A stretch of 55,241 nucleotides of DNA, counting the filler, from Bipalium vagum (Eukaryota), in assembly GCA_037834085.1 (NCBI GenBank). It is 3 parts of 3 records of this genome, joined end to end, with 100 filler letters (N's around TTAATTAATTAA, not from the genome) between each part and the next. Parts side by side here need not be neighbours in the genome. Positions count along the whole stretch, not along the records: positions 23,136 to 39,118 come from JBBMKC010134779.1; 2 more parts are not named here. One strand, 5' to 3'. The notes under the pieces were generated by a model. The model did not search any database and had not been told where the DNA came from. It saw only the letters and a list, made by a program, of their open reading frames with translations. A program made the translations under genes and the position numbers. Positions 23,136-39,118 of this stretch are shown here, piece after piece; position 1 is the first letter of the stretch; the number at the start of each line of letters is the position of its first letter.

Positions 23136-24339
23136 ATTATTTGTTCAAAAGAAGATATTTTCTTTGGCTAGATCACTTTGAAATTCAAGAATTGATTTTT
23201 TTCGCAATTTATTATTGTTAGAAAAATATTACAAAAAATTGTAATTATTTTTTCAGATGTACTATTGTAATATAATATGTGAAAAGTATTTTTATTTTGG
23301 AAACTTTCCAATTATGAAATTTTGTGAATGGATAAAGATTAGGAGTGTTGGATGATTATAAAAGTAGAGTCGAAGTAATTTTGACTTCATTCTACTGAGT
23401 ACCTTGTTGGGCAATTTATTATTTTATTTATATTTTCTGTTAGGTATTTGAATTGTTCAGTTTATATGGCTGTTTAAAGTCAAGGGAGCTCTGAAATTTC
23501 TTTTTCTGTTCATGCAAGATAGAGCGAAAAACTGCTTTTGGTGTGGCTTTGATTATTTTTTTCAGAAATCCATCTTCTCTTTTTTCACTTAAGAAAAAGT
23601 ACAAAGTGTAGTGTAAAAAAGCATGTCACATTCCATTGACACAGAGGGCCCAAAAAATATTCATAATTTAATAAATAATACCGTATTTGAAAAACTATCT
23701 AACAAATCAGGACTTGAAACCCATAAACTTTCATTGTAAAATTATCAAAGATTATTACGATTTATAACCTTTGGTAGAGCGTTTCGAATTCAAAGTTCTT
23801 ACGAAATAAATCTTCGATGAGAGACACCCAAGAAAGATGGATTCATGTTTAAACTACTTTCTAAATTGACAATTATTTGTTTTGCCGAAAAGATTACAAA
23901 TTTCGAAAGTAAATCCTGTCTTGTATTTTTATCTAGGTAATAAGATGATTGTGGATATGGTGATGCTTTTTTCAGTTATATAACTGATAGCTAATTAAAG
24001 TTTGTTTTAAATGATTCTTGTACAGGCAACATAAATTCATTTACAAGACGTAGAGGTCAAATGTAAAGTTTGTAAAATGTGAATTATCGATAAATGCTTT
24101 TTTCATAAAAATACTTGAATCTCTTTTTCAGTTACAATTTGTATTAAATTCATTCAACTTTTTTGAATTAATAATGAAAAATGAGCTGACCATTACAATT
24201 TCCAGTTTCAAATCTTCTGTTGTTGATATTGTTAGAGATTCCAATAAAGCTTGCAAGCCTCTCTTGTCTAACTCTGAAGGGTCTATTTCTCTGAAGGAAC
24301 TATTTTCCACATTTATCCAATGTCGTCTCTTTTGTCTGG

Positions 24340-24600
24340 TCTAAATCAAAGAATCCAAGGTACATTAACAGTAGTAGCTAACAGAAAAAGTTTTATTCTG
24401 CAACACGATAACGGTAGACCTCATGAATTGGTGAAAATTAGACAGGAGGTTCTTTCACATCTGTTTTTATCACCCAGTCATTGGTCTGTGAGATTTTCAC
24501 CACTTCTTCTCGTAACAACAATTTTTGAATGAAAAACGAGTTTGATTCAAGTGGAATTGATTTGCTGCATGAAAGATGGATAATCATGTCAATTATTATA
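24340..24600 (+). mobile_element. mariner transposase remnant
   Basis: RKSFILQHDNGRPH ... GIDLLHERW motifs. Confidence 0.7.
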
Positions 24601-25479
24601 ATGAATAAAAATACGTTTGTTTCTGAACTTTTATAAAACATTTACACATTACCAATTCTTCCTTTCTTGTCAACCTTGCAAATATTTTTCTTTCGTTTCT
24701 TAAAAATTGTGCCCAGTTATAAATGAAAATATTTATGGTTATCTCTCTTCAATATTTTTTCATAGTTTCTGCTAATCAGTACAATTTTTTCTATGTTGGG
24801 AGCACCGATCAATTTGAAGTTCGAGTTTTTAAAAAAATCGATTGTAAATAGTATTGGTACTTATGACAAGGGTTAGCTAAATTTTGAAAATTCGAGTCAA
24901 AATATATTTGAAAAAAATTTAGACAGGACACAGTAGGTAACCTAAAAATCATTAGTAAAACAAGTAGAATTTAAAAAACTTCATTAAGAGATTTTATAAA
25001 TAATAATTATATTATTTATTTTTATTTACCAAAAAATCATTATCTAGATATTCTTAACAAATATAAAAACATTGAGGATGAAATACATGGACAATAACGA
25101 TAATATTTACAATTCAGAGTAAGTAACGATTATGTTGGACTGACCTCTGTGAATAGAGAACCATTCTATGGATTTTCGAACAACAAAATCGTTAAAATCA
25201 ATCTGATAAAATGTTAAGGACAGATGAAAATAGTTACATGTACGTAAAATGAAAGTGTCCAATTAATCATTACTAAGAGACCATATGAACAGCTTTCTAG
25301 TACATTTGATTAATGTCACCACATATCTTAATAGAAGAACATCACTAAAGACATGAAGAAATAATTAACAAGATCATTAAAACTATAGTGGCCATAAAAA
25401 TGCATGCAAAGGCCAATCAGACCACATGGAAATCTTTAAGAACGCGAAAAAAAATGAAAGATATATAATAATAAGTACA

Positions 25480-25650
25480 GAAATCTGGCACGAGTAGGTC
25501 ATAAAAACTCCACTTCCCATATATGATATTTCGTGTTATAATTGCTTGAATTATCATAATAATAAAAATTGCTTCTGGAAAAACTATTTGCGAATGCCTT
25601 TCCAAATGTTCACAGCAGCATAAATCGCAAACTACGACTATTTCGTAACT
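25480..25650 (+). mobile_element. Possible non-LTR retrotransposon ORF1 (gag-like knuckle) remnant
   Basis: CYNCLNYHNNKNC followed after a frameshift by TICEC..KCSQQH, resembling the tandem knuckles of I/Jockey-type ORF1. Confidence 0.4.
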
Positions 25651-27299
25651 GAAACATCCACTTTTCCTTACTAAATATTTTAACATAATCCGCTTCACTT
25701 TGCTATTTATCTCTAATTGCTTCCACGGCGATTTGCACAGAAAGTCGTTAGCACATAAAAGTACCAAATTAAAAACAATAAAATTTTTTTATTCAAATTA
25801 TTGAAAAATAAATTTATATATTATCATAAAACTGTCAAAGTCCGCATCACAAATGCTGAAAATCTGTTCCAGTCAAAAGTTTCATACTCTCAAACCGAAA
25901 TATCGAAAACAATTTCTAATTTACTATTAATAGCAAAAATACTTTAACAATTCTTTTGTTCAATATTTCCTATTTATCGTATTAAAAAGAAAATTCACCA
26001 ATTGCTTTGCACTATAATTTTTAAAGGTTAAAAAAACTATAAAAAAATTTTTGTTTTAATTTTCCACTTTTTAATAATTTTAAACATCCGGGAAATTTGA
26101 ATATTTTTCAAAAGTAAACCAAAATGACATACCTCAATTTTTGGTCCCTATATAAATTTTAAAAAATCTAATTAAAAAATTCTCCTAGAAAACGTTCCGC
26201 AATTTTAAAATATTTAATTAATAAATTATTTCGTTTTCACAAAAATTCTTAAAATATATACGCCCATTATCTGGCGGCAAAATCGAAATTAAATACCGAA
26301 AATTAACTCATTGATTTTTATCAATATATATATAATAAAAAAGAAAACTTTATTTCAACTATTCAACCACAAAAAAGTCAAATCGTAAATTATATCGAAA
26401 GATTTTACATCGAAAATTTTCGATGAATAAATTTCAAATATGAAATGGCAGGTGCGATGAAAAATAAAATCGATTAAAAGACATCATTTTTCCGATGGTA
26501 ATTGGGAATTAATAATTCCCAATTTAATGTGTATGGCATTCCATTATGAAATTTCACTTTCTTGCAAGCAGAAAATCACGAGTTCTTGAAATTAGGTGAT
26601 AGATTTTTGCAAGTTAATATTAATGACTTACCATAAAATCGATGCAAGCAGAAATACAAAACATGTAATAGTACAAATGGAGTCTGGAAATATCTAAATA
26701 ACGACTAACCAATCGCCAAAGACGTCAGAAAATAATTATTGGACAATAACTAAAAAATAGACAGACAGTCAAACACACACACTCTCATACAGTCAATACG
26801 AACAAGTTGATTTTGTGATATGCTCAGCTAATTTCCGACAAAGCATTGGGTCATTGAAACAGTAACACACATTGGATTTCTTGATCTAAATATATGCCTA
26901 TATGTGTAAGCAAATCCATAATTGTGTGTCATAATATCTGTGTGTCGTTGTCCTTGTGTCTGATAACATGCACGCACGCAAATATGAACAGGACCATTCA
27001 GGATATTGAGATACACACACAAATAGAGTACAATATTCGGTTACAGAATCTCGCTTTAGCCATAGTCATAATTACACACACAGCTCCAACACAGACAATA
27101 CACACCTAACAATTTGTTTGTCTGCAATATCCTTTGTACTTTTATTTGGAGCATATTTTTCAATATAAATATGCTTAAAATTGATATCTTGTTATTGAGT
27201 TTTATTTTACCAATTTTCGTTGTTGTTTTTGTTTGAAGATATATATTATTTTTTCACCGTGTTTGGCTTTAATCATTATTCTAGTATTTAATCGATACA

Positions 27300-29724
27300 A
27301 TGTTTATTTTACGGTGAGTTGATTTCTTTTATTGTCCATGAAATGTTATTCACAGTCGCCATTTCATTTAGAATAGGAGCTGAAGCTTTGAAAAATTCCG
27401 ATCATGGTTTTTGTAACCATTGTTGCACGAACAGTATTAGACATTCCAATCATGGAAAAATGAAAAATAAAAACCATTTCCAAATCGATAATTACAACGA
27501 TAATGAACGACCGGTCGATCAGGGAATTCTCTACAATCTATTGAACAAAAACAAACAATCTCCCCAATTAGACCGGAATCACAATATCGAAATGAACGAT
27601 TTGTCACGAGTTCTCGTCAATGATAGACCGAACAGTTCCGATCTCGAATCGATCAAACTTCTGTCCCCGAACACATCGTTGAGACCGTCATCGGCACCGA
27701 CGACCATCCGTTTCCATCCTTATTATAAACCGAACAAGACCGACAAAGACGACCATCACAATCACAAAAATCATTCAGAACCGCTGACCAACATCTATCC
27801 TAATCAACTGTTGATGGATTGGCTGACCAACAACATTCTGTTGATGAAACCCAACAAATCCAGTGATTTAATGGTTCTGAATGTTTTCCAATTACCAGAC
27901 ATTGATAGGACACGAATTCTGAAGCAATCGTGGCATTTGATATTTGTAACGTATCTCGTAGAATTTATCCAAAACAGCCGCCAAAGCACCAAGTCGATTT
28001 TAAGTATTTTCATTAAAGATTACAACAAAACGGAAAAGATCGGCAATTACAAAAAGCTTTCACGACTGACAAAGGTCTTCACCAACGATTTGGAAGATGT
28101 TATCAATCAAATGATCTCGCTGAAACTGAAGCACAATTTGCTGGAATTGTTGAGAATAGCTATTTTGTTTGCAGGTTTTGCTTTTTCTTATATTTATTTT
28201 CCATAATTTATCGATTGGTGTTATTTATATTTGTATAATTAAAACAAAAAAAGATTTTTCACGGAAATATCAACCCATTGATCGATAATTGAAACAAAAA
28301 ATATTTCCGAACTTATATAGACTTGAATTAATGGTTGATAAAAATTTCTTCAATAAGATTTCTTTTTAAAAAAACCTCTGAAAAATTATCTAAAAACAAA
28401 TTATTGAATTAAATATCAATGATTTCTAATCTCAACAGTAAATATGCTATTTTTAGTAACAAATTTGTACTTTGATTATTAATTTAATGACAACAGCATT
28501 CCAATAAAATTAGATCACGATCTAGGATCATTTAACAACTTGAAAACAAAAGTAAAAATATAAAATGTTATTTTATGATTGGTTCCACTTTGTTACTTAA
28601 AACAGATATTTAAAAATTTTGTTTTAATTATCGTCCGAATTTATTAAAATTATTTTATATTTTTATGTTGATATGGAACGATCACAAGAAACGGGGAATA
28701 TCAATAATGGCATTTAGAACAAACAAAAAATTATTGGTAGTCGATATATAAAATACATTATGTAAGAAGAAAAACAAAAATTTGTAATTCAAAATGATTT
28801 ATTTTTTTTTGAAAGGCTCAAGCAAGTGCTAAGCAACAAAATTTGTATTTTAAGAAAAACAGTCTCGTTCTATCTACTTTCTAACAGTTTGCTGCAACAT
28901 TGCAATAAAATCTGAAAAATTCTATTTTCTTATATTTCTTAGTGTCAGAATAAGGAAAAAACATTTCCTGCTCTTAGTTTTCATGAAATATGTTTGGAAA
29001 TATTATTTTAAGAATATATATATGGATGAGGTCGTCTACTATGAATAAATAAGGAGTAAATTTTACAACTAACTTGGAAAGGGGTGGTGTAATTTACTCG
29101 TATTGATGTATTTGGTTCATGGAAAGCATTTGATCAATTTTTTACAATGTTTACAAATAATTATTTTTTCTGTCAGTCTATTTTTATTTGGAAAAATATG
29201 TTGTTCATTGGATTATTTAGTAATATTTATAATAATAATAATAATAATAATAATAATCAAATTGAATCTTTTTTCATTTTTTATTTCAAATTAATAAATA
29301 ATAAAATATAATTTTTTGAAATAAATATTATTTATAAATAAATTAATTAATTTAAAATCAATAAATAAATTTAAAATTTAATTTAATTTAAAATTAAATA
29401 GTTAATTAATTTAATAAAAATAATTTAAAATCAATAAAAAAATTACCATTTTAAATAATAAAGACGTTTTATAAAATAAATAAATTTTTAAAAAATAAAT
29501 AAAGGCTCTATCTTTATTTAGACAATCACGAAGATATCAAGAAGAAAAATATAGAGTTATTGAAACCGATATTGGGTACGCGGTCCAATGAATATAACAA
29601 ATTGTTTGATCAGCTTCTGGAAAACCTTTTCAAGCTTGACGTATCAATGATTGAATCTGTGTTTTTTAGTCATTTATTCCAATCTGTCGACAGCATTATT
29701 GATGAGCTCTACGCTAAACTTTAG
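27300..29724 (+). CDS. Nuclear receptor lacking a DNA-binding domain, DAX-1/SHP (NR0B)-like, 3 exons, 339 aa
   Basis: Exons 27300-27313 (ATG TTT ATT TTA CG|gtgagt), 27372-28174 and 29522-29724, phases consistent. LBD signature VFQLPDIDRTRILKQSWHLIFV, LLRIAILFA|D, and C-terminal IESVFFSHLFQSVDSIIDELYAKL. N-terminal NR box QGILYNLLNKNKQS. The LBD call is strong; the 5' end and subfamily are less certain. Confidence 0.82.
29229..29257. repeat. (AAT)n microsatellite in nuclear receptor intron 2
   Basis: About nine tandem AAT units. Confidence 0.85.
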
Positions 29725-30199
29725 CTCTTACGGCTCTTGATAAAAAAATCTTGAAATTTTATTTATATATTACTATCCAGATGGTGATATTCTCCCTGTG
29801 TGTTTCATCTGTACATTGCTTAAATGGAATTCAACAATACCATGTCCATATGAATTTGACAATAGGCTCATTGCAATTTTAAGACCATTTTCGTTGAAAT
29901 AAATTTTTTATTTATTTTATTTTATTAAACATTTATTGATATTCGGTTTTCTTTTTTAATTGAACCAATTAATGTTATGTTATTCCGGTGTATGGATTTC
30001 TTTTTATTTTGGGTGCTAAGTTTGTTATTCATAATTAATAGACCTGCGTAGACTCGACCGACCTCAAAGCACTTTTTCAGTATATCACCCTGTGGAGTAG
30101 ACGATTCGGATTTCTCAACTCAATTATAAAAATATTTTTGTTCGAAAATAATCGAAATATCCCCAATATAAATTTGGGCTTGTGTCTTATGAGTGTAAA

Positions 30200-30830
30200 T
30201 AGAATTGTAATGTAAAGATGCCAACACTATGTATATAGTTATTTGCATGTGGTAACAAAGTCTAAAAAAAGGACCAATTAACGTGTGACTCAAAGGTTTT
30301 GATGTGACATATTGGAGGACAAGACTGGAGACTAAGTTAAGTAAAGATGAATTGAAAGCGAATCTTGGTGTTTGTAAGTCAACTGTTTCTCTTCCTTAAA
30401 GATCAGAAGTTTAATCTTAAGTACTTAACTATAACACGATCTGAATGAGAATCAGGTTGATTACAATTGCAAGTCTAAATGATCTTTTTAATCTCAGAAT
30501 ATAAAGGTGTATTGCATTTGACAGTTGCCCACACTGATTGGATGTTGCTGAGCAATGAAACTTGCGTCCAATCTGTCTTCATGAAAAACCATGATGGATA
30601 TAAATTTCAGATATTACTTGGATTCATTTGTTACGGCATCTTAGAACCTGAATGATAATATTGTAGGTTAAATTGAGATCATGCTAAAAAAGTTGGTTCA
30701 AAAACCGTCAAAGTCTAAAATGGAAAGACGCCAATTTTATTTAGCGATAACGCTGGACAACGTGTATCTGGAGTACCAATAAATATGTCGGTTTGATTTA
30801 AGAAGTATGTCTCATCTGATTTATTTAGGT
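30200..30830 (+). mobile_element. Highly decayed mariner-like remnant
   Basis: LEDK...KDELKA-like N-terminal stretch, LGVCKSTVS, and an ..DNAGQRVS (HDNARPH-like) motif. Confidence 0.45.
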
Positions 30831-31656
30831 GGTCTTTGACTATTATGGTATCTTTTATTCAATCTTTTATTGCTACTAACAGGTTCCTGAATCAAGGTTC
30901 CGTTTAATGATCGGTTTTCGAATTAATAGGTCCTGGTTTTAATTAAATAACTTAAATCAATTAGTGTCTTATTAATACAATGGTATTAAAAACAATGGGA
31001 AATAGTTCAATTAAAAAATATTATTATTATTATTAAAAATAATAAATCTGTTCAATATTGTCATCTTGACTTTTGATTAATCAAATAAAAAACATCTTCG
31101 ATACCACAGATGGTAAGGTTTCGGTTGAATCATAATTGGTTTTGGTTTCAAGAGTAGCGTTTTAAGGATTGAATGGGGTTTTAGGGACAAAAAAATCAGT
31201 TCAGAACCGCTTTTATTAAAAAATTATACGCGTACAAAATAATGACCGATTTTCAAAGATATGCAACTGATGTCCGGAATGTGGGGTTGGTTAATAATTA
31301 TTGAATTCGGTGAAAAGCGGTAGAGTCGGTAATAAGTCATTTTGCAAAGAATATAATAATTATCACAACAGTGACTAAATTAAAAACCCAGGTTTTCAAT
31401 TTGTGCTTATTTGATCCCCCAATATAAAATGGCTTAATCCTCAAATAAAATTTATTTATGTTATATGGGTTCTGTGAAGAGTGATGGAAACGAAAGTGAA
31501 ACGTGAATTGTTTATTGAAATTGCTTTTATTTTTTGACATAGTATCCAAAAAATTCAATACGTTTAGTCCAGTTCTTAAATAAAGCTATGTCATGTTTGA
31601 AGTGTGATTCCGGAAGGTATGCAAAATACTGGTCTACCGCTATACAAAAATTGGTA

Positions 31657-31735
31657 AACCTCTATATAACGACAGTTTGGCGTTCCCAATGGGTGTCGTT
31701 ACAAAGAGGTGTCGTTATATAAAGGTTCCATTGTA
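31657..31735. mobile_element. Miniature inverted-repeat element (pogo/Tigger-like TIR)
   Basis: AACCTCTATATAACGACA (31657-31674) and TGTCGTTATATAAAGGTT (31710-31727) are 17/18 inverted matches; the right end finishes CCATTGTA. Confidence 0.55.
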
Positions 31736-31739
31736 TTAG

Positions 31740-31980
31740 GTTCTTCGTTTGATAAAAAACGAATCTCTTGGAAATTTTTTGAAAAGATAGAAGTTATTTG
31801 GAGCCAAATCTGGAATGCAAGGTGCTTCTTCAAGCATATAATAATCTTTGATTTTTGCCTTAGGCAAAACACTTCTGTGAATCTCTTTTTCTTCTGTAAG
31901 CCAGGTCTCTTTTACCAATCATTTTATGCAACTGATCTATTGGCCTCTCTGCAGAACTCTAAAAGAAATCAATTGACATG
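31740..31980 (-). mobile_element. mariner transposase remnant
   Basis: LEEAPCIPDLAPNNFYLFKKF (YSPDLAP motif). Confidence 0.7.
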
Positions 31981-33284
31981 ATCACGGTGGACCACATGAG
32001 GAGACATAATTAGAACGACACCTCTAGAAATTGACGACGTAGTTTGTAAACATCACATTGTGATAAAATCGAAAAAATCTTTATTTCATATTGCACTTTA
32101 ATTCATCGAACACATTAAAACAAACTTAAATAAAAAATAATATTAAAATTTTTAAAATAAAAAAATGAAAAGGAAATTTTTATTATTTTAAGAGCACAAG
32201 ATATGATAAAGAAATTCTTGACGGAAATCCCATCAATTATTTCAGCGAGGATTATTCTGAAAGCACGGTTCACAAGAGCTATGCGAATTACCAAAGTCAA
32301 AAAGAAATTAAAAATTGGTGATAAGTAAATAAATTTCACTGTAAAAGTAGGTGGGTCAGTTAAAAAGTGTCTAAAATCAATATCACTAAATTTGGTTATA
32401 GCATTTAGTATTTGTGACCAAATTACAGTGTTATTCAAAACCATAACAACGTGTATTACAAAATTAGGAAATTACCGAATATTAACCTAAATTATTTATT
32501 GAATAAATGGTTCTTTTGTTCTAGCTTTTTGCAACCACCGTCTCATACCACTGAATTATCATAGAAATAAGCACACCTATTCTTTTTGATTAAAAATAAA
32601 TTGCTCTGTTTCTGAAAATTGAGCATGTTTCACTTGAATTGTTGCTTTACATGTTTGCAAAGCTGGGACAAATGTAATTCCATCTTCATGAGATTTAATT
32701 AGTTTACCAATAGTAAACCTACTTAAATCGACAGCTCTTTAAATATTATTAATGTTATGTTCACAGGAAGTGTGCATACCTCTTGTAATGTCTTACATTT
32801 CTTTAGTAACATATTTTTTTGTTTAATATATTAGGCATCACGGATTAAAATAAGAATTGTCAATAAAAATGACTTCAGATATAGTAAACGAATATTATAT
32901 TTAAAACAGCCATTCTTGATAAGGAATACTTGAAATGTGAAACTTAAATTACATGTTGTTATGGTTTTGGTAACCACAGGTAACAAGAACTGTAGAATTG
33001 GGACATTATTAGGACAAATGAACACCTATCGTTAGATTTCTTTCTTTTGAATTTTTGGAACTGCGTGGTTTGCTAGAGGCTTTAAAACACTCGGCTTATA
33101 ATATTTTAACATATAGGTTCCATAAAAAGTTATAAAATCTGCATTTATAAAACAGTGTAAGAACCAATATTTCTATGGTATTTTTAAGTCATATTTCAGC
33201 ATAAGAAATGTAAAATTTTGTTTAAATCAATCACTTTATTATTGTGGAGTACATGTTTGTATTTGATTTATCATTTATTATTCT

Positions 33285-34060
33285 TAATATGGAAACGATT
33301 GATTATCTCACAGTCATCAGACTTTTTTCTTATGGCATTAACTACATCGGAAATTCACAGTAAAATGATTAAAATATTAAACTGGTCTGTATTTTCACCT
33401 TCTATTGTCCATCAATGGGGTTTCGAGTTTAATTTTGATTAAACAATCATCAAAGAGGATGTTCATACTGAACGCCCTACAAGTGCCTCAAACCAGAAAT
33501 CGTTAAACGAATTCATGAAATTTTGCTAAGAGATCCAAGTGTGAATGTAAGTGTTCATCATATTTATTAGAAGATTTTTAAATGAAAAACGTATTGAAAA
33601 AGTGTTGCTGCATTCCTTAACCCTTCAACAAAAGATCTTCAGAAAGCAATTTTTGGTAACATTTGAATCTTCTTAATAAAAATAAAATTTATTTTATGTG
33701 TCTTTACATAACTATGGACGAGACTTAGATTTAGCACCATTATCCTAAATTGAAATGAGAGTGGATCAGTTGCATGTAATAATTCGTGAAGAGTCCTGAT
33801 TTACTGAAGAAAATCATTTTAATCAAGATAATTCAGTTGTTCGCATAAGTGTTTCGCCAAAGGCAAAAATCATAGAATAATATTATCTTTTGTTTGAACC
33901 TTATTGGTCAGATTTGGCTCCAGGTAACTTCTACTTTTTCAGAATATTAAAGCATTTTTTCAATGGAAAGAGTTTTTCATCCAATGAAGATAATGCAGAT
34001 AATTTTTATCGAGTATTCGCTTTGTGAAGAAATAGAAACTTTTAGACCTCAAACCATTTC
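33285..34060 (+). mobile_element. Decayed mariner element
   Basis: N-terminal LTTSEIHSKM...VHQWGFEF..EDVHTERP, then ITMDET*I*HH and PYWSDLAPGNFYFF. Confidence 0.8.
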
Positions 34061-36494
34061 ATGTTAACATATATATGAGACCAGTTATTTATCGACTCTT
34101 CATAATTAGCAAAATATTTAAAAAATTTATTAAATCGTACAAAATCAGCTTAGACTATGGCCCTTAAATTCTAAAATTTCTTACAGACGTAAAACTTTCG
34201 ATTTAAACCGCCAAGCTCCACATCTATCATTTTTCCAATGACACCTTTCAAGCAGTTATTTTGCAAATGTTAATATATTTTAGCCTTATTTATTTTACGT
34301 CGTTCAGGACACTGATTCCAATTCCAAGCCGCTCAACTGAGGGATTACCAAATTTTTGAAAGACATTTTATAAATATTCTTAATAAGAATAAAAATTCTA
34401 AGATGTACTGACATCATATTTAGAAATACAGTTGCTCCAAAAAGTAAGTTAACAAACCTATATATATTGTATTTTAGCCAATAGTTTTTAACAAAATAAG
34501 TTTAATTAGATGAGATTTAATCCCTCAATATACCTTTAAATATTAAGGATTAAGACTATATCAGTTCTTCTGGATAATAAGTAATATTTGCGTATTTTTT
34601 TAGTTGTCAAAGTTAAGGTTAACAATTTAGCCCTGTCATAAGTAAGTTACCAAATTTTTGAAAGATAACTATACTTTAATTATTAACAAAAATACATGTA
34701 GAATCCTTCTCTAACAGGTAAAGAGCAGTAATTAAAAAGAACTATTTTAAAAATAAAATATATTACCACAATTTCTCAAAGTATAAAATTTGTTTAAATA
34801 AATAATTTTAATTTTTGAATACTATTCAAATTAAAGGTTAATATTTTAAATGTGACCATGTTTAAACATTTTACGGATGAAGAAAGAAGAATCTTATTAG
34901 TAATGTATGATAATCCTATCTGAATATGGTAACACTTTTACCATAAAATAATTTTAGGAAGACAATGTTAACTTACAAGATCAAAGAGCCCACAAAACAT
35001 CAGTGTTCCTTATTTTGAATTTAAATTCCTAAAAAAATGCAATGGTTCTAAACAGTTTTAATTTAATTTTTCATTATCACGAATAAACGTTTCCATGGTG
35101 ATAGATAAACAAAATAAGTAAAAGTGAACAGAGACAGATATATTTAAATATTAAAAGGTCAAACTAAAGTTAGCATAGTTCATAGAGTTTTTTGTAAATC
35201 CTAAAGCAAATTTCTTCAGCAATCTAAAAATAAAAAGAAAATATATTAAATAATACGCATCAGCAATTATCATGTTTGAACTCTTCTCTATTTAATGAAA
35301 TTTATTTGAAAAATGATACAGATATTTTAAACCCCATTAGAATGAAGACTGAAACCTGATAAATCTTTAAAAGTCTTTTATTACAGAAACTATAAAATGT
35401 AGAATTATAGTTAAATGTGATTGGTTGAATCATTCTGTACATTTAAGAACTATTAGTAACATAACATTTCTTCAAAATGTGATTTATTTTCTCATTATGA
35501 ACAATTATTTTATCAATATAGATATGAAGTTTAGCTGCTGCACCTTTTTTTCTTTTTAAACACCTGCTATACTTATCAACATCTTTTAAAATAATTTTTT
35601 CTATTATTTTCATTTTGTTTTAATATTACTATAAAATTGAAGTTAATGATTTAAAATTATATTTAACGATTTATTGATATTACACAATTTATTCTTCCTT
35701 ACAACACTTTATTTATATTAAGAAATATTTATTTTCAAAAGATTTTAGGTGAAGATGGAATTTTTATATTTTAAAAATAAATAATATTTTAAAAATATAA
35801 TTTCATTTAATAATTAAATATTTTAAATTAAAAAATTTAATATTGAAAAATATTTCTATTTTATAACTATAATACATGACGATTTTATTTATATTTTTTA
35901 AAGGTTTTAATTTATTTTACTTCTTAGGAGCATCAGAAAAAACTTTACATTATAGAGATATTTTTTTAATATTTAATAAAACGAGCTCTGATTTTTTAAA
36001 TGTTAAAAATGTTCAGATTTACTTCTGATTTTCACTTAGCCCATAAATATGTTACCTTAAGATTTCATTAATAATTTAGAGCATTGATAATTACACAGGA
36101 TATTCTTGAAGCTGCTGATCTGATAAGACAATAAAATTAGGAAGCAGGATACATAATTATTCTTTTTTTGTTTTATCTGATGATACTCATTAAGGTAGAA
36201 CTACGAAATGAGGGAGAAAATTAATTAGAAATAATACTTTTAAATATGTTATATGGTTGAATGAAACTTAAGAGATATTCTTTTTTTATAAATTATTATT
36301 ATATTTATAAATAATAATAAAAATAATAATAATAATACTATTTAATATATATATATATATTTATTTGTTTATTTATTTAATATTTTAAAATATTTATTAT
36401 TATATTTGTAGGAATTTTAAATATTGTGCTCTTTGATAGATAAATGTCACTGTCGATTTGAATAAAACAAATAAATTTTATTTATATTTATAAG

Positions 36495-37100
36495 TACGAG
36501 GTGCGGATAAAAGCGTTAAAGTATCATTCTTACGGAAATGTAAATGAAATTAACATAAAACATTTTTCGAAAATCAATGAATACGGACTCATTTTTCTAT
36601 ATAACCATCTTTTGCTTCCAGGTACTTCATCCAATGAATTTACTAATTACCAGGGACCATTTTCGAATATACATACATATTTTCATTGTAAAATATTGCT
36701 CTTGTCTTAAAGATCCTTTTTTTTTGTTCTCGTTAATGTTTTCTCAAATGATTAAACAAAAAGAAATCACTAGGAGTCAAATCAGGACTATAAAGTTTGT
36801 ATGATACCAGCACGAAGCATGCTAAAACAATTAAATTTATAGTTCGGTGAGCTGTCTGAACTGGAGAGTTGTCATAAAAAAGATTGGGGCTCCGTTGTCA
36901 CTTTCTGACAGCACTAACAAGTGCATAGTAGTAATTAGAGTCGATGAACCCAACCTTTGAATCCCAAAACGCATTAAGCTTGGGATATTTTCAATGAGAT
37001 GTCTTTGAACGAACCATTTTTTATGACTTTTCCTTCCACGTTTGACATACGGAACATAAGTACGCATCTCATACTTCATTATAATATTCTTCAAAGAACT
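36495..37100 (-). mobile_element. Decayed mariner element
   Basis: TIR-like TACGAGGTGCGGATAAAAG at 36495; minus translation LYSPDLTPSDFFLFNHL. Confidence 0.75.
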
Positions 37101-38200
37101 CTGTCCAAGAACACTGAGAAAGGCTAGATTTTCTTGGCATGCTTGTATTCACTTTTCTGACAAAACTGATGTCAACCTAAGCCTAACTTTTGAACCTTTA
37201 TACGGATCTAAATTATTCAAAAATGGAGAAAAAATTCTTAACACTGTTCCTCAAAAATGACAGCTTTGATATAAACATTGAAAAAGATTTATTATTATTA
37301 TTATTAATTATTATTACAATTAATATCTAATTTCAAAGTCACCAATAAATTACTTTTGCATGGAATTTTTCCTAGAAATTTGATTTGATAGACACATTTA
37401 TTATTTTTTGGCTTCGATTTCATAAAGTATATCTGCTTAGAGTTGACAATACACCGTCCAGAAATGAGTTTCGGTATCAAGACCCTTTCACATTTACCTT
37501 GACAAAGCAAAACAAATAATCAATCTCTCGTGAGATAATTTACTTGAGCAAGGAATCTGATCGACCTCCTGTGAGTTTTCATCACACGTTGGACTGTTGT
37601 AACGGGTATAGATAATTGAAGCTGATCCATTCTTGCAAACTGACAGACGATAATAGTTTTCTTTGCAGGCTTTGCCAGATACTTTTAAAGAGAAATGATT
37701 TAAAAAACAATAATTAGGCTTGTTTGATGAAAGAAATTCATTTCAAAACATCATGTGCCAATAAAACAATGTCCATTCCATTAATATAAACAAATAATGG
37801 GTATTATGTTTATTATTTTTATAGTGTAAGTAATCATCATCATCATTATATAATTAAGGTACACCCTTAATGTCACTGATGAAATATTGTTAAATCGGTG
37901 AATAGTCTGAGAAGATTTGATTCCAGTTTTTTTTCTGAAGTAAAGTGTGTTACTGAAGAGCGATACTTATGGTGATGAAGTTATTATTTGTCAGAACAAA
38001 ATGTTTAATTGTTTTGAGTTGGTGCTGACTATCTGTAATCATACCCGAAAGAAGGTTGACAATGAAATCGTCAACAACCTTCTCAGGTACATTTTCTTAA
38101 AATGGAAGGTTTAGATTTTGTGATTAGTTTATGTAGAGAACATTGTAGAGAAGCTGTCAAATATGAAAAGTGGTTCTATTTTAAAAAGCGCATTCTCATA

Positions 38201-38850
38201 TACGATGGTGAATCCAAAAGTTCCCGGAATGATGTTGACGTTTTCAAAAATTAACACAGAGATTAAAAATACTGTTGTATCTATTCATTGCACTTATAAC
38301 TAAAATAATGCACAATTTTATTAAAATCAATAAATTTGTTTAAGCTAATCATTTTGGAAAATGGAAACTGCAAAATTTAAATGTCTTGTGATAATGAGAT
38401 TCATAACCAAACTCGGATAGGCAACATCAAATATCATCGAATCTTTGAAAAAAATTCATCAAGATGATGAGTAAAAGAAAACCGTTTATTAATTGGTAGA
38501 CAGATTTAAGGAAAGCATAGAAAACATAAAAGGTGAACACAGAACTGGATGATGGTCAACACAATGAGAGCGAAAATTGTATTCATTGTCGAATCGATGG
38601 TTGCAGAAAATAAGCGAATATCTGTTCAGGTTATAGCCAATTCTGTGAACATATCATAACCTCATTCCATTTTAAAAGATCGTTTGGGATTGTGCAACCT
38701 TTATGTTAAATGGGTGCCAACCGCGTTCCATAAAGAACACAGAATGCTAAGAGGAGACAACAGATTTGATGACGACCCCGAAGACTTTTAAAGCAGACTA
38801 GTAGCTGATGATGAGGCATCGATTTACCAATACGAAGAAATGATTACCAA
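38201..38850 (+). mobile_element. Decayed mariner element, 5' half
   Basis: TIR-like TACGATGGTGAATCCAAAAGTTCCCGGAAT; GLCNLYVKWVP (WVP motif) and RLVADDEASIYQY (first catalytic D region). Confidence 0.8.
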
Positions 38851-39118
38851 AAGTTACTGCATCGATTTTTTATAAATGGTTATTAGAATTGGATTTGGAA
38901 GTTAAAAATTTCACAAAAAATAATATTAATAATCGATAACTGTCTTTCACATAGAATTGATATTGAGCTAAAATCAATTGAATTTCTGTATATTCCTCCA
39001 ATTTTAACATTTACAGTCCCTTGCCATATTATTAGGGACATTTAGAAAAATGTATAAATTTTAACTTTGTGGGTGTTTGTTGGAATATTAATATAAAGTA
39101 ATTAGCTATTGAAGATGT

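Follow-up and report, generated by a model that had tools for sequence, protein, structure and literature searches.

A gene of Bipalium vagum that may encode an atypical nuclear receptor with a ligand-binding-type domain and no DNA-binding domain, resembling DAX-1 and SHP

The closest described counterparts of the gene reported here are DAX1 and SHP (NR0B), nuclear receptors (NRs) that bind the activation function 2 (AF-2) of other receptors through short boxes (PMC3346990; PMC1891300). Sea bass DAX1, for example, is a protein of 301 amino acids with the box NSILYNILKS at residues 17-27 (PMC1891300). The genes for DAX1 and SHP have two exons and one intron within the part encoding the ligand-binding domain (LBD) (PMC3346990; PMC1891300); in sea bass DAX1 this intron lies about 80 residues from the C-terminus. 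The AF-2 of SHP has an Asp (PMC3346990). NR0B1/2 receptors have also been described in Platynereis dumerilii, Crassostrea gigas (CgNR0B), and Tridacna (giant clam DAX1). NR0B1/2 already existed in the spiralian ancestor that annelids share with molluscs, and in an annelid it affects growth, lifespan, and fertility (PMC13012086). Here we describe a gene from a 55,241-nucleotide stretch of DNA of Bipalium vagum (assembly GCA_037834085.1), referred to below as the window. The piece examined comprises positions 23136-39118 of the window (16 kb), of which 4.1 kb lie upstream of the gene. We read this as a functional gene for an atypical NR that has a ligand-binding-type domain, is without a DNA-binding domain (DBD), and is DAX-1/SHP-like in action, with a probability of about 0.68.

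Conservation of the gene and its ligand-binding-type domain

The gene has three coding exons of 14, 803, and 200 nt, totaling 1017 nt or 339 codons, and an in-frame TAG is found 18 nt 5' of the ATG (coordinates in Table 1). With exon 2 as query, a word-based search of 5.8 billion proteins returned two relatives only, on contigs L001 and L002 (64-67% identity), and a metagenome scan added a third, L003 (62% protein identity). Across these three contigs, all of which hold this gene, protein identity is 62-69%, and in an alignment of exon 2 from the window, L001, and L002 (alignment A1) identity is 66-69% and mean column identity 85%. L001 and L002 are genomic, with the ATG mini-exon, its donor, a short intron at the same place, and the acceptor before IGAEALKN all kept. 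L003 has neither intron; its mini-exon is joined straight to exon 2, and ..ILFT is followed at once by DNHEDIKKKNIELLKP.., showing the junction ILF(A/T)|DNHED in the spliced state. Since both introns are gone, L003 goes back to a spliced mRNA, either directly or, possibly, by way of a retrocopy. The spliced open reading frame (ORF) of 339 residues proposed in an earlier note on this DNA is thus borne out, with all exon limits as described there and both junctions found already joined in L003.

This is a real gene under purifying selection throughout, far beyond chance. The ratio of nonsynonymous to synonymous substitution rates (dN/dS, Nei-Gojobori) is 0.04-0.19 in exon 2, where synonymous sites are near saturation. 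Exon 3 shares 39 of 47 residues with L003, and its synonymous sites differ in a proportion (pS) of 0.93 against 0.11 for nonsynonymous sites (pN). At positions 1090-1096, L003 has seven T's versus six in the window, which shifts the frame 18 codons before the stop, yet the tail remains conserved when read in the new frame, and its stop falls at the same position (GHLFQPVDCIIDELYSNL*; pS 0.84 versus pN 0.12). Because the frame downstream is still conserved, the extra T is probably an error of the contig (assembly or sequencing) or a very recent lesion.

Homology of the C-terminal part to NR LBDs is very probable, on evidence that is weak but convergent. When trimmed LBD pieces were compared with Pfam, the top match in all four species was PF00104 (Hormone_recep), at 15.8-18.9 bits and E-values of 0.0011-0.01. 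All four pieces align in one register, with residue 33/34 on profile position 39, and the match extends over positions 39-152 of the 213 in the profile; in the window it covers 27790-28173 (E 0.01). With ESM-Atlas features for residues 140-267 of exon 2, 28 of 30 neighbors were PF00104 clusters, the top score being 0.94 with 185 shared features. The sequence contains, in this order, (V/M)(E/D)WL, LPDxDRxRILKQSWHLIF, LRIAILF(A/T)D, ..VFF.., and IIDELY, the second of which is invariant or nearly so among the relatives. We take (V/M)(E/D)WL to be helix 3-like, LPDxDRxRILKQSWHLIF to be the LBD signature, LRIAILF(A/T)D to be helix 8-like, and IIDELY to be the AF-2 core, which would be the canonical order.

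Structure prediction, which the earlier note had proposed, also gave a fold resembling NR LBDs, with a model of low confidence. An AlphaFold model of L003:567-1097, built with a four-sequence alignment, is all-helical (pLDDT 55.6, pTM 0.46); an earlier model of exon 2 only, with three sequences, was unusable (pLDDT 36). Among the rows that Foldseek listed for the L003 model, 47 of 49 are NR LBDs, none with E < 0.001, and after VIA re-ranking of the Foldseek list the top 50 of 50 are NR LBDs (Z 7.9-8.9). An exhaustive VIA search of 48,161 chains, which is independent of Foldseek, placed NR LBDs of about 30 receptors at ranks 1-34 (Z 8.3-5.5) and the first non-NR chain at rank 35. The equivalent part of the model aligns to residues 268-442 of RXR and to other LBDs. 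Since the model is of low confidence and the Z scores are moderate, these comparisons give moderate support for the three-layer alpha-helical sandwich of the LBD fold. The LBD had been described in the earlier note as complete; a domain of LBD type is indeed found, but its completeness is not upheld, as the PF00104 match is below threshold and confined to profile positions 39-152 of 213, and equivalents of helices 1-2 were not identified.

Several results weigh against this reading. All four PF00104 matches fall below the gathering score of 23.5 bits, and neither whole exons nor the whole L003 protein gave any PF00104 match. HMMER searches of PDB with single sequences and with profiles A1, A5, and A7 found no NR, a profile search of 1.84 billion proteins returned the gene's own family only and no NR, and ESM-Atlas gave no usable match with exon 3 alone. 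The AlphaFold model is of low confidence and lacks helix 12 owing to the frameshift in L003, and VIA Z scores below about 13 may reflect merely a common helical arrangement. An Atlas fold search with the model found unrelated bacterial folds at template modeling (TM) scores below 0.4. An unrelated all-helical protein with a weak resemblance to an LBD would account for sequence evidence that is everywhere under curated thresholds, for the negative HMMER-PDB result, for a low-confidence model with Z of about 8, within the range cautioned for helical proteins, and for the bacterial folds. We consider such a protein highly improbable here, because four kinds of weak evidence point to one family in one register, the top 34 of 48,161 chains are all NR LBDs from about 30 receptors, and the signature-like region, helix 8-like motif, AF-2 core, and NR box occur in the expected order.

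The missing DNA-binding domain and the NR box

A search of all six frames of 23136-39118 for C4 zinc-finger spacing (C-x2-C-x12-14-C-x2-C and C-x4-6-C-x8-10-C-x2-C) or a P-box found none, in agreement with the earlier statement that no DBD-like exon is present upstream on the contig. Zinc-finger coding was likewise not found in the transcript-like contig L003. Upstream of the gene, the window and L001 share a block with TATAAATA at about 95% identity, amid DNA that is otherwise unalignable. This block lies about 105-135 nt 5' of the ATG and is probably the core promoter. The 5' end of L003 lies about 20-25 nt downstream of the TATAAATA block, with alignment to the window from about 27188 on; from there L003 follows the genomic DNA collinearly as far as the ATG, which is the first in the contig and is preceded by an in-frame TAA. 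Given this collinear 5' end just past the block and the upstream stop, at least one transcript therefore starts at the proximal promoter, at a conserved TATA-proximal site, and its product begins MF(I/L)LRIGAEALKN.

Since the piece extends no more than 4.1 kb upstream of the gene, a second isoform could include DBD exons from farther away, and the single sequencing run containing the stretch is not recorded as RNA; both count against a product that is always DBD-less. They would also suit an ordinary DBD-bearing receptor with zinc-finger exons beyond those 4.1 kb, in which the 339-residue form is one isoform or an incomplete model, as would 5' truncation of L003. We judge this to be quite improbable: the ATG mini-exon is conserved in four species and its donor is kept in L001 and L002, in-frame stops precede the ATG both in the genome and in L003, and the 5' end of L003 is collinear up to the conserved TATA box and is not joined to another exon. 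Conservation of the N-terminal IGAEALKN in all four species and the lack of any zinc-finger pattern on the piece argue in the same direction.

Near the N-terminus, the window, L001, and L002 share VDQGILYNLL without any change, and L003 retains DQGILYNLL. The pattern ILY[NAS][LIM]L, defined after the data were seen, occurred in 154 of 200,000 composition-matched shuffles, and the generic LxxLL in 6.7% of shuffled N-termini. Motifs quoted in the earlier note as recalling NR0B, namely QGILYNLLNKNKQS from 27520, KSILSIFI, and the ending IESVFF..SVDSIIDELYAKL*, were all located, and with them the phase 1 intron in the Asp of ILFA|D, which is the only intron of the LBD. The N-terminal box, likened there to those of DAX-1 and SHP, is present, conserved, and similar to NSILYNILKS, but Pfam gave no match to a DAX-type repeat. 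KSILSIFI is conserved only as S(I/V)LxxFIKDY, that is, as LxxFI and not as LxxLL. The C-terminal ending and the intron, the latter by the earlier note's own concession, are not specific to NR0B: a C-terminal FF..AF-2 pattern and this position of the LBD intron are common to several NR groups.

More generally, the likeness to NR0B receptors holds for the architecture and the box, whereas orthology was not supported, as no NR0B protein came from sequence searches and Dax-1 is not the best structural match. A true but extremely diverged orthologue of spiralian and vertebrate NR0B1/2 (DAX-1/SHP), a sub-case of the reading given at the outset, is therefore a possibility that we hold only tentatively. 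It would explain the shared architecture, with the NR box at the N-terminus, the LBD at the C-terminus, and no DBD, the resemblance of ILYNLL to NSILYNILKS, rare among shuffles under a post hoc pattern, and a single LBD intron at a possibly corresponding position, 67 residues from the C-terminus here versus about 80 in sea bass DAX1. That NR0B1/2 was present in the common spiralian ancestor of these two phyla, the annelids and the molluscs, is also in its favor. Among the structural matches, the Dax-1 chain 3f5c_C is at VIA rank 6 and within 1 Z unit of the top (Z 7.4, root-mean-square deviation (rmsd) 3.8 Å over 136 residues), tied with many others; its structure-based identity of 8%, however, is the lowest among the top matches, compared with 10-16% for HNF4, VDR, COUP-TFII, and LRH-1. 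Neither the profile search of 1.84 billion proteins nor the word-based search of 5.8 billion recovered an NR0B protein, and the AF-2 has Glu here versus the Asp of SHP. Pfam searches with N-terminal pieces from four species, at E-values up to 10, found no family and no DAX-type repeat, and of the Cys-rich N-terminal repeat of 65-67 residues known from DAX-1 nothing but a conserved CC dipeptide was seen. SHP likewise has no Cys-rich repeat, and such a repeat is therefore not required of all NR0B.

The same divergence could instead reflect independent loss of the DBD from another NR subfamily, followed by convergence on a DAX/SHP-like box. This would be in line with the extreme distance from every NR, with a structural ranking that shows no preference for NR0B, with only four closely related carriers and no bridging homologues found, and with flatworm NR sets that are rich in divergent, lineage-specific members (PMC8363021). 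Convergence would have to produce an ILYxLL box, loss of the DBD, and a DAX1-like exon split together, which is less parsimonious than descent from an ancestral spiralian gene, and we regard an independent loss as rather unlikely. It is similarly unlikely that the lineage holds an uncatalogued, Pfam-invisible family of DBD-less NRs, in which an "NR that regulates NRs" would have originated independently for a second time. The reading we prefer, a DBD-less NR that is DAX-1/SHP-like in action, does not depend on NR0B orthology, which is one sub-case of it.

Gene layout and other features of the piece

The features of the gene are collected in Table 1. Its extreme N-terminus is strongly conserved (27373-27470 of the window and the equivalents in L001, L002, and L003), reading MF(I/L)LRIGAEALKN, then a CC pair and HSNxG; within it, the window, L001, and L002 agree in every residue of IGAEALKN, which L003 has as well. 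The NR box is joined to the LBD by a linker of low complexity, a hinge that evolves fast and consists of long poly-Asn in L003 (about 480-560) versus His/Asp/Lys-rich sequence in the window (about 27740-27780). Weak HMMER-PDB matches of the gene were to ribonucleotide reductase or to poly-Asn linkers and were judged spurious.

Table 1 Features of the gene, in window coordinates
Feature	Position	Strand	Description
Exon 1, 14-nt mini-exon	27300-27313	+	Start ATG; M F I L and 2 nt of Arg; donor CG|gtgagt
Intron 1	27314-27371	+	58 nt, GT..AG, phase 2; read directly
Exon 2	27372-28174	+	Conserved N-terminus IGAEALKN.., low-complexity linker, first part of LBD (about helix 3 to helix 8)
Intron 2	28175-29521	+	1347 nt, GT..AG, phase 1 inside Asp codon G|AC after ..ILFA; read directly
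Exon 3	29522-29724	+	Last 67 codons of LBD (about helix 9 to helix 12); ends ..IIDELYAKL; stop TAG 29722-29724
NR box QGILYNLL, LXXLL type	27520-27543	+	Core ILYNLL 27526-27543; kept in relatives
LBD, first part	27790-28174	+	..DWL.. (helix 3-like), LPDIDRTRILKQSWHLIF (LBD signature region), KSILSIFI, LLELLRIAILFA (helix 8-like)
AF-2 core IIDELY	29695-29712	+	Hydrophobic-hydrophobic-x-Glu-hydrophobic-hydrophobic; found in window and L003
Promoter-proximal block with TATAAATA	27162-27197	+	36 nt, conserved versus L001
Candidate polyadenylation signal	29898-29903	+	About 175 nt past the stop; pattern match alone

Within intron 2, a 62-nt block at 28445-28506 (L001 1270-1330) stands out by its 94% identity to L001, the rest of the intron being unalignable. 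The block is single-copy on the piece, forms no convincing hairpin (-4.9 and -8.6 kcal/mol), and may serve as an enhancer within the intron or belong to some other class of conserved non-coding elements. The same intron contains AT-rich tandem repeats at 29221-29445, made up of (TAA)12 and periods of 17-37 nt. Outside the gene, two short ORFs at 24320-24532 (+) and 31736-31918 (-) look by eye like mariner/Tc1 fragments (..HDNGRPH.. and ..PDLAPNNFYLF..), which suggests that they are decayed transposase remnants. Pfam searches with ten other ORFs of the piece, the mariner/Tc1-like ones included, found no match at E-values up to 1, and Rfam scans of 23136-29460 and 29510-39118 likewise gave no match. 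The GC content is 20-35%, which, like the transposon-like debris, fits a planarian without proving one.

Proposed action, significance, and comparison with known receptors

Without a DBD, the predicted product would be unable to bind DNA or to select genes itself, and for this reason a DAX-1/SHP-like action appears most likely. With its NR box conserved and its AF-2 core intact, the protein would dock, by way of the box, a surface of the LBD, or both, onto the AF-2 groove or the dimer interface of DNA-bound receptors, with receptors of the NR5A/FTZ-F1 or HNF4 type as the putative partners. Such docking would change the co-regulator recruitment of these partners, and their activity would be modulated, probably repressed. 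By analogy with DAX-1 and SHP, a co-repressor-like role is thus most plausible; that this function is entirely inferred counts against the reading as a whole.

Flatworm NR catalogues have indeed been built from DBD searches, the kind of survey that the earlier note described as missing NR0B proteins, and the flatworm surveys consulted list no NR0B (PMC8363021). With no DBD and with an LBD under Pfam thresholds, the present gene is therefore invisible to these catalogues, and no annotated protein for it was found in the 5.8 billion- and 1.84 billion-protein databases searched. LBD-only receptors with NR boxes are already known; because spiralian NR0B1/2 has been published, the description of the gene as part of an overlooked invertebrate NR0B system was overstated. 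The apparent novelty lies in a member that escapes Pfam, HMMER, and DBD-based flatworm surveys alike. In a planarian, an animal used for the study of stem cells and regenerating gonads, it would be an additional modulator of the DAX-1/SHP type. If NR0B orthology is true, NR0B would be extended to another spiralian phylum; if the gene is not orthologous, it would represent convergent evolution of a receptor-on-receptor repressor. The ILYNLL box and the AF-2 core offer direct handles for two-hybrid and RNA interference tests.

Compared with canonical NR LBDs, the domain shares the order of signature region, helix 8 motif, and AF-2 core, and those of NR5A (SF-1/LRH-1), NR3 (ER/ERR), NR2B (RXR), and NR2E (PNR) are its best structural matches, at Z 8.3-7.3 and an rmsd near 4.3 Å for roughly 145 of the 177 residues. 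Canonical receptors, however, have a DBD and reach Pfam thresholds, whereas structural identity is 8-16% here and the PF00104 score 16-19 bits.

Vertebrate DAX-1 and SHP resemble the gene in the absence of a C4 zinc-finger DBD, in an N-terminal box of the ILYxxL kind (here GILYNLLNK), and in a C-terminal LBD with an AF-2 core. In both cases a single intron splits the part coding for the LBD, and the 339 residues found here are near the 301 of sea bass DAX1. There are also clear differences. Homology to the vertebrate proteins is not seen at the level of HMMER, and the Cys-rich repeat of 67 residues was not detected here. The present gene has in addition a 14-nt first coding exon and a low-complexity linker of about 90 residues between NR box and LBD; its last exon encodes 67 residues of the domain versus about 80, and it keeps the AF-2 Glu, unlike SHP. 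Spiralian Nr0b1/2, likened here from published descriptions, differs in being recognizable as NR0B by ordinary phylogeny. Those receptors share with the B. vagum gene the lack of a DBD, the LBD, and LXXLL-related motifs, and if the genes are orthologous, the ancestral spiralian gene would be the ancestor of this one.

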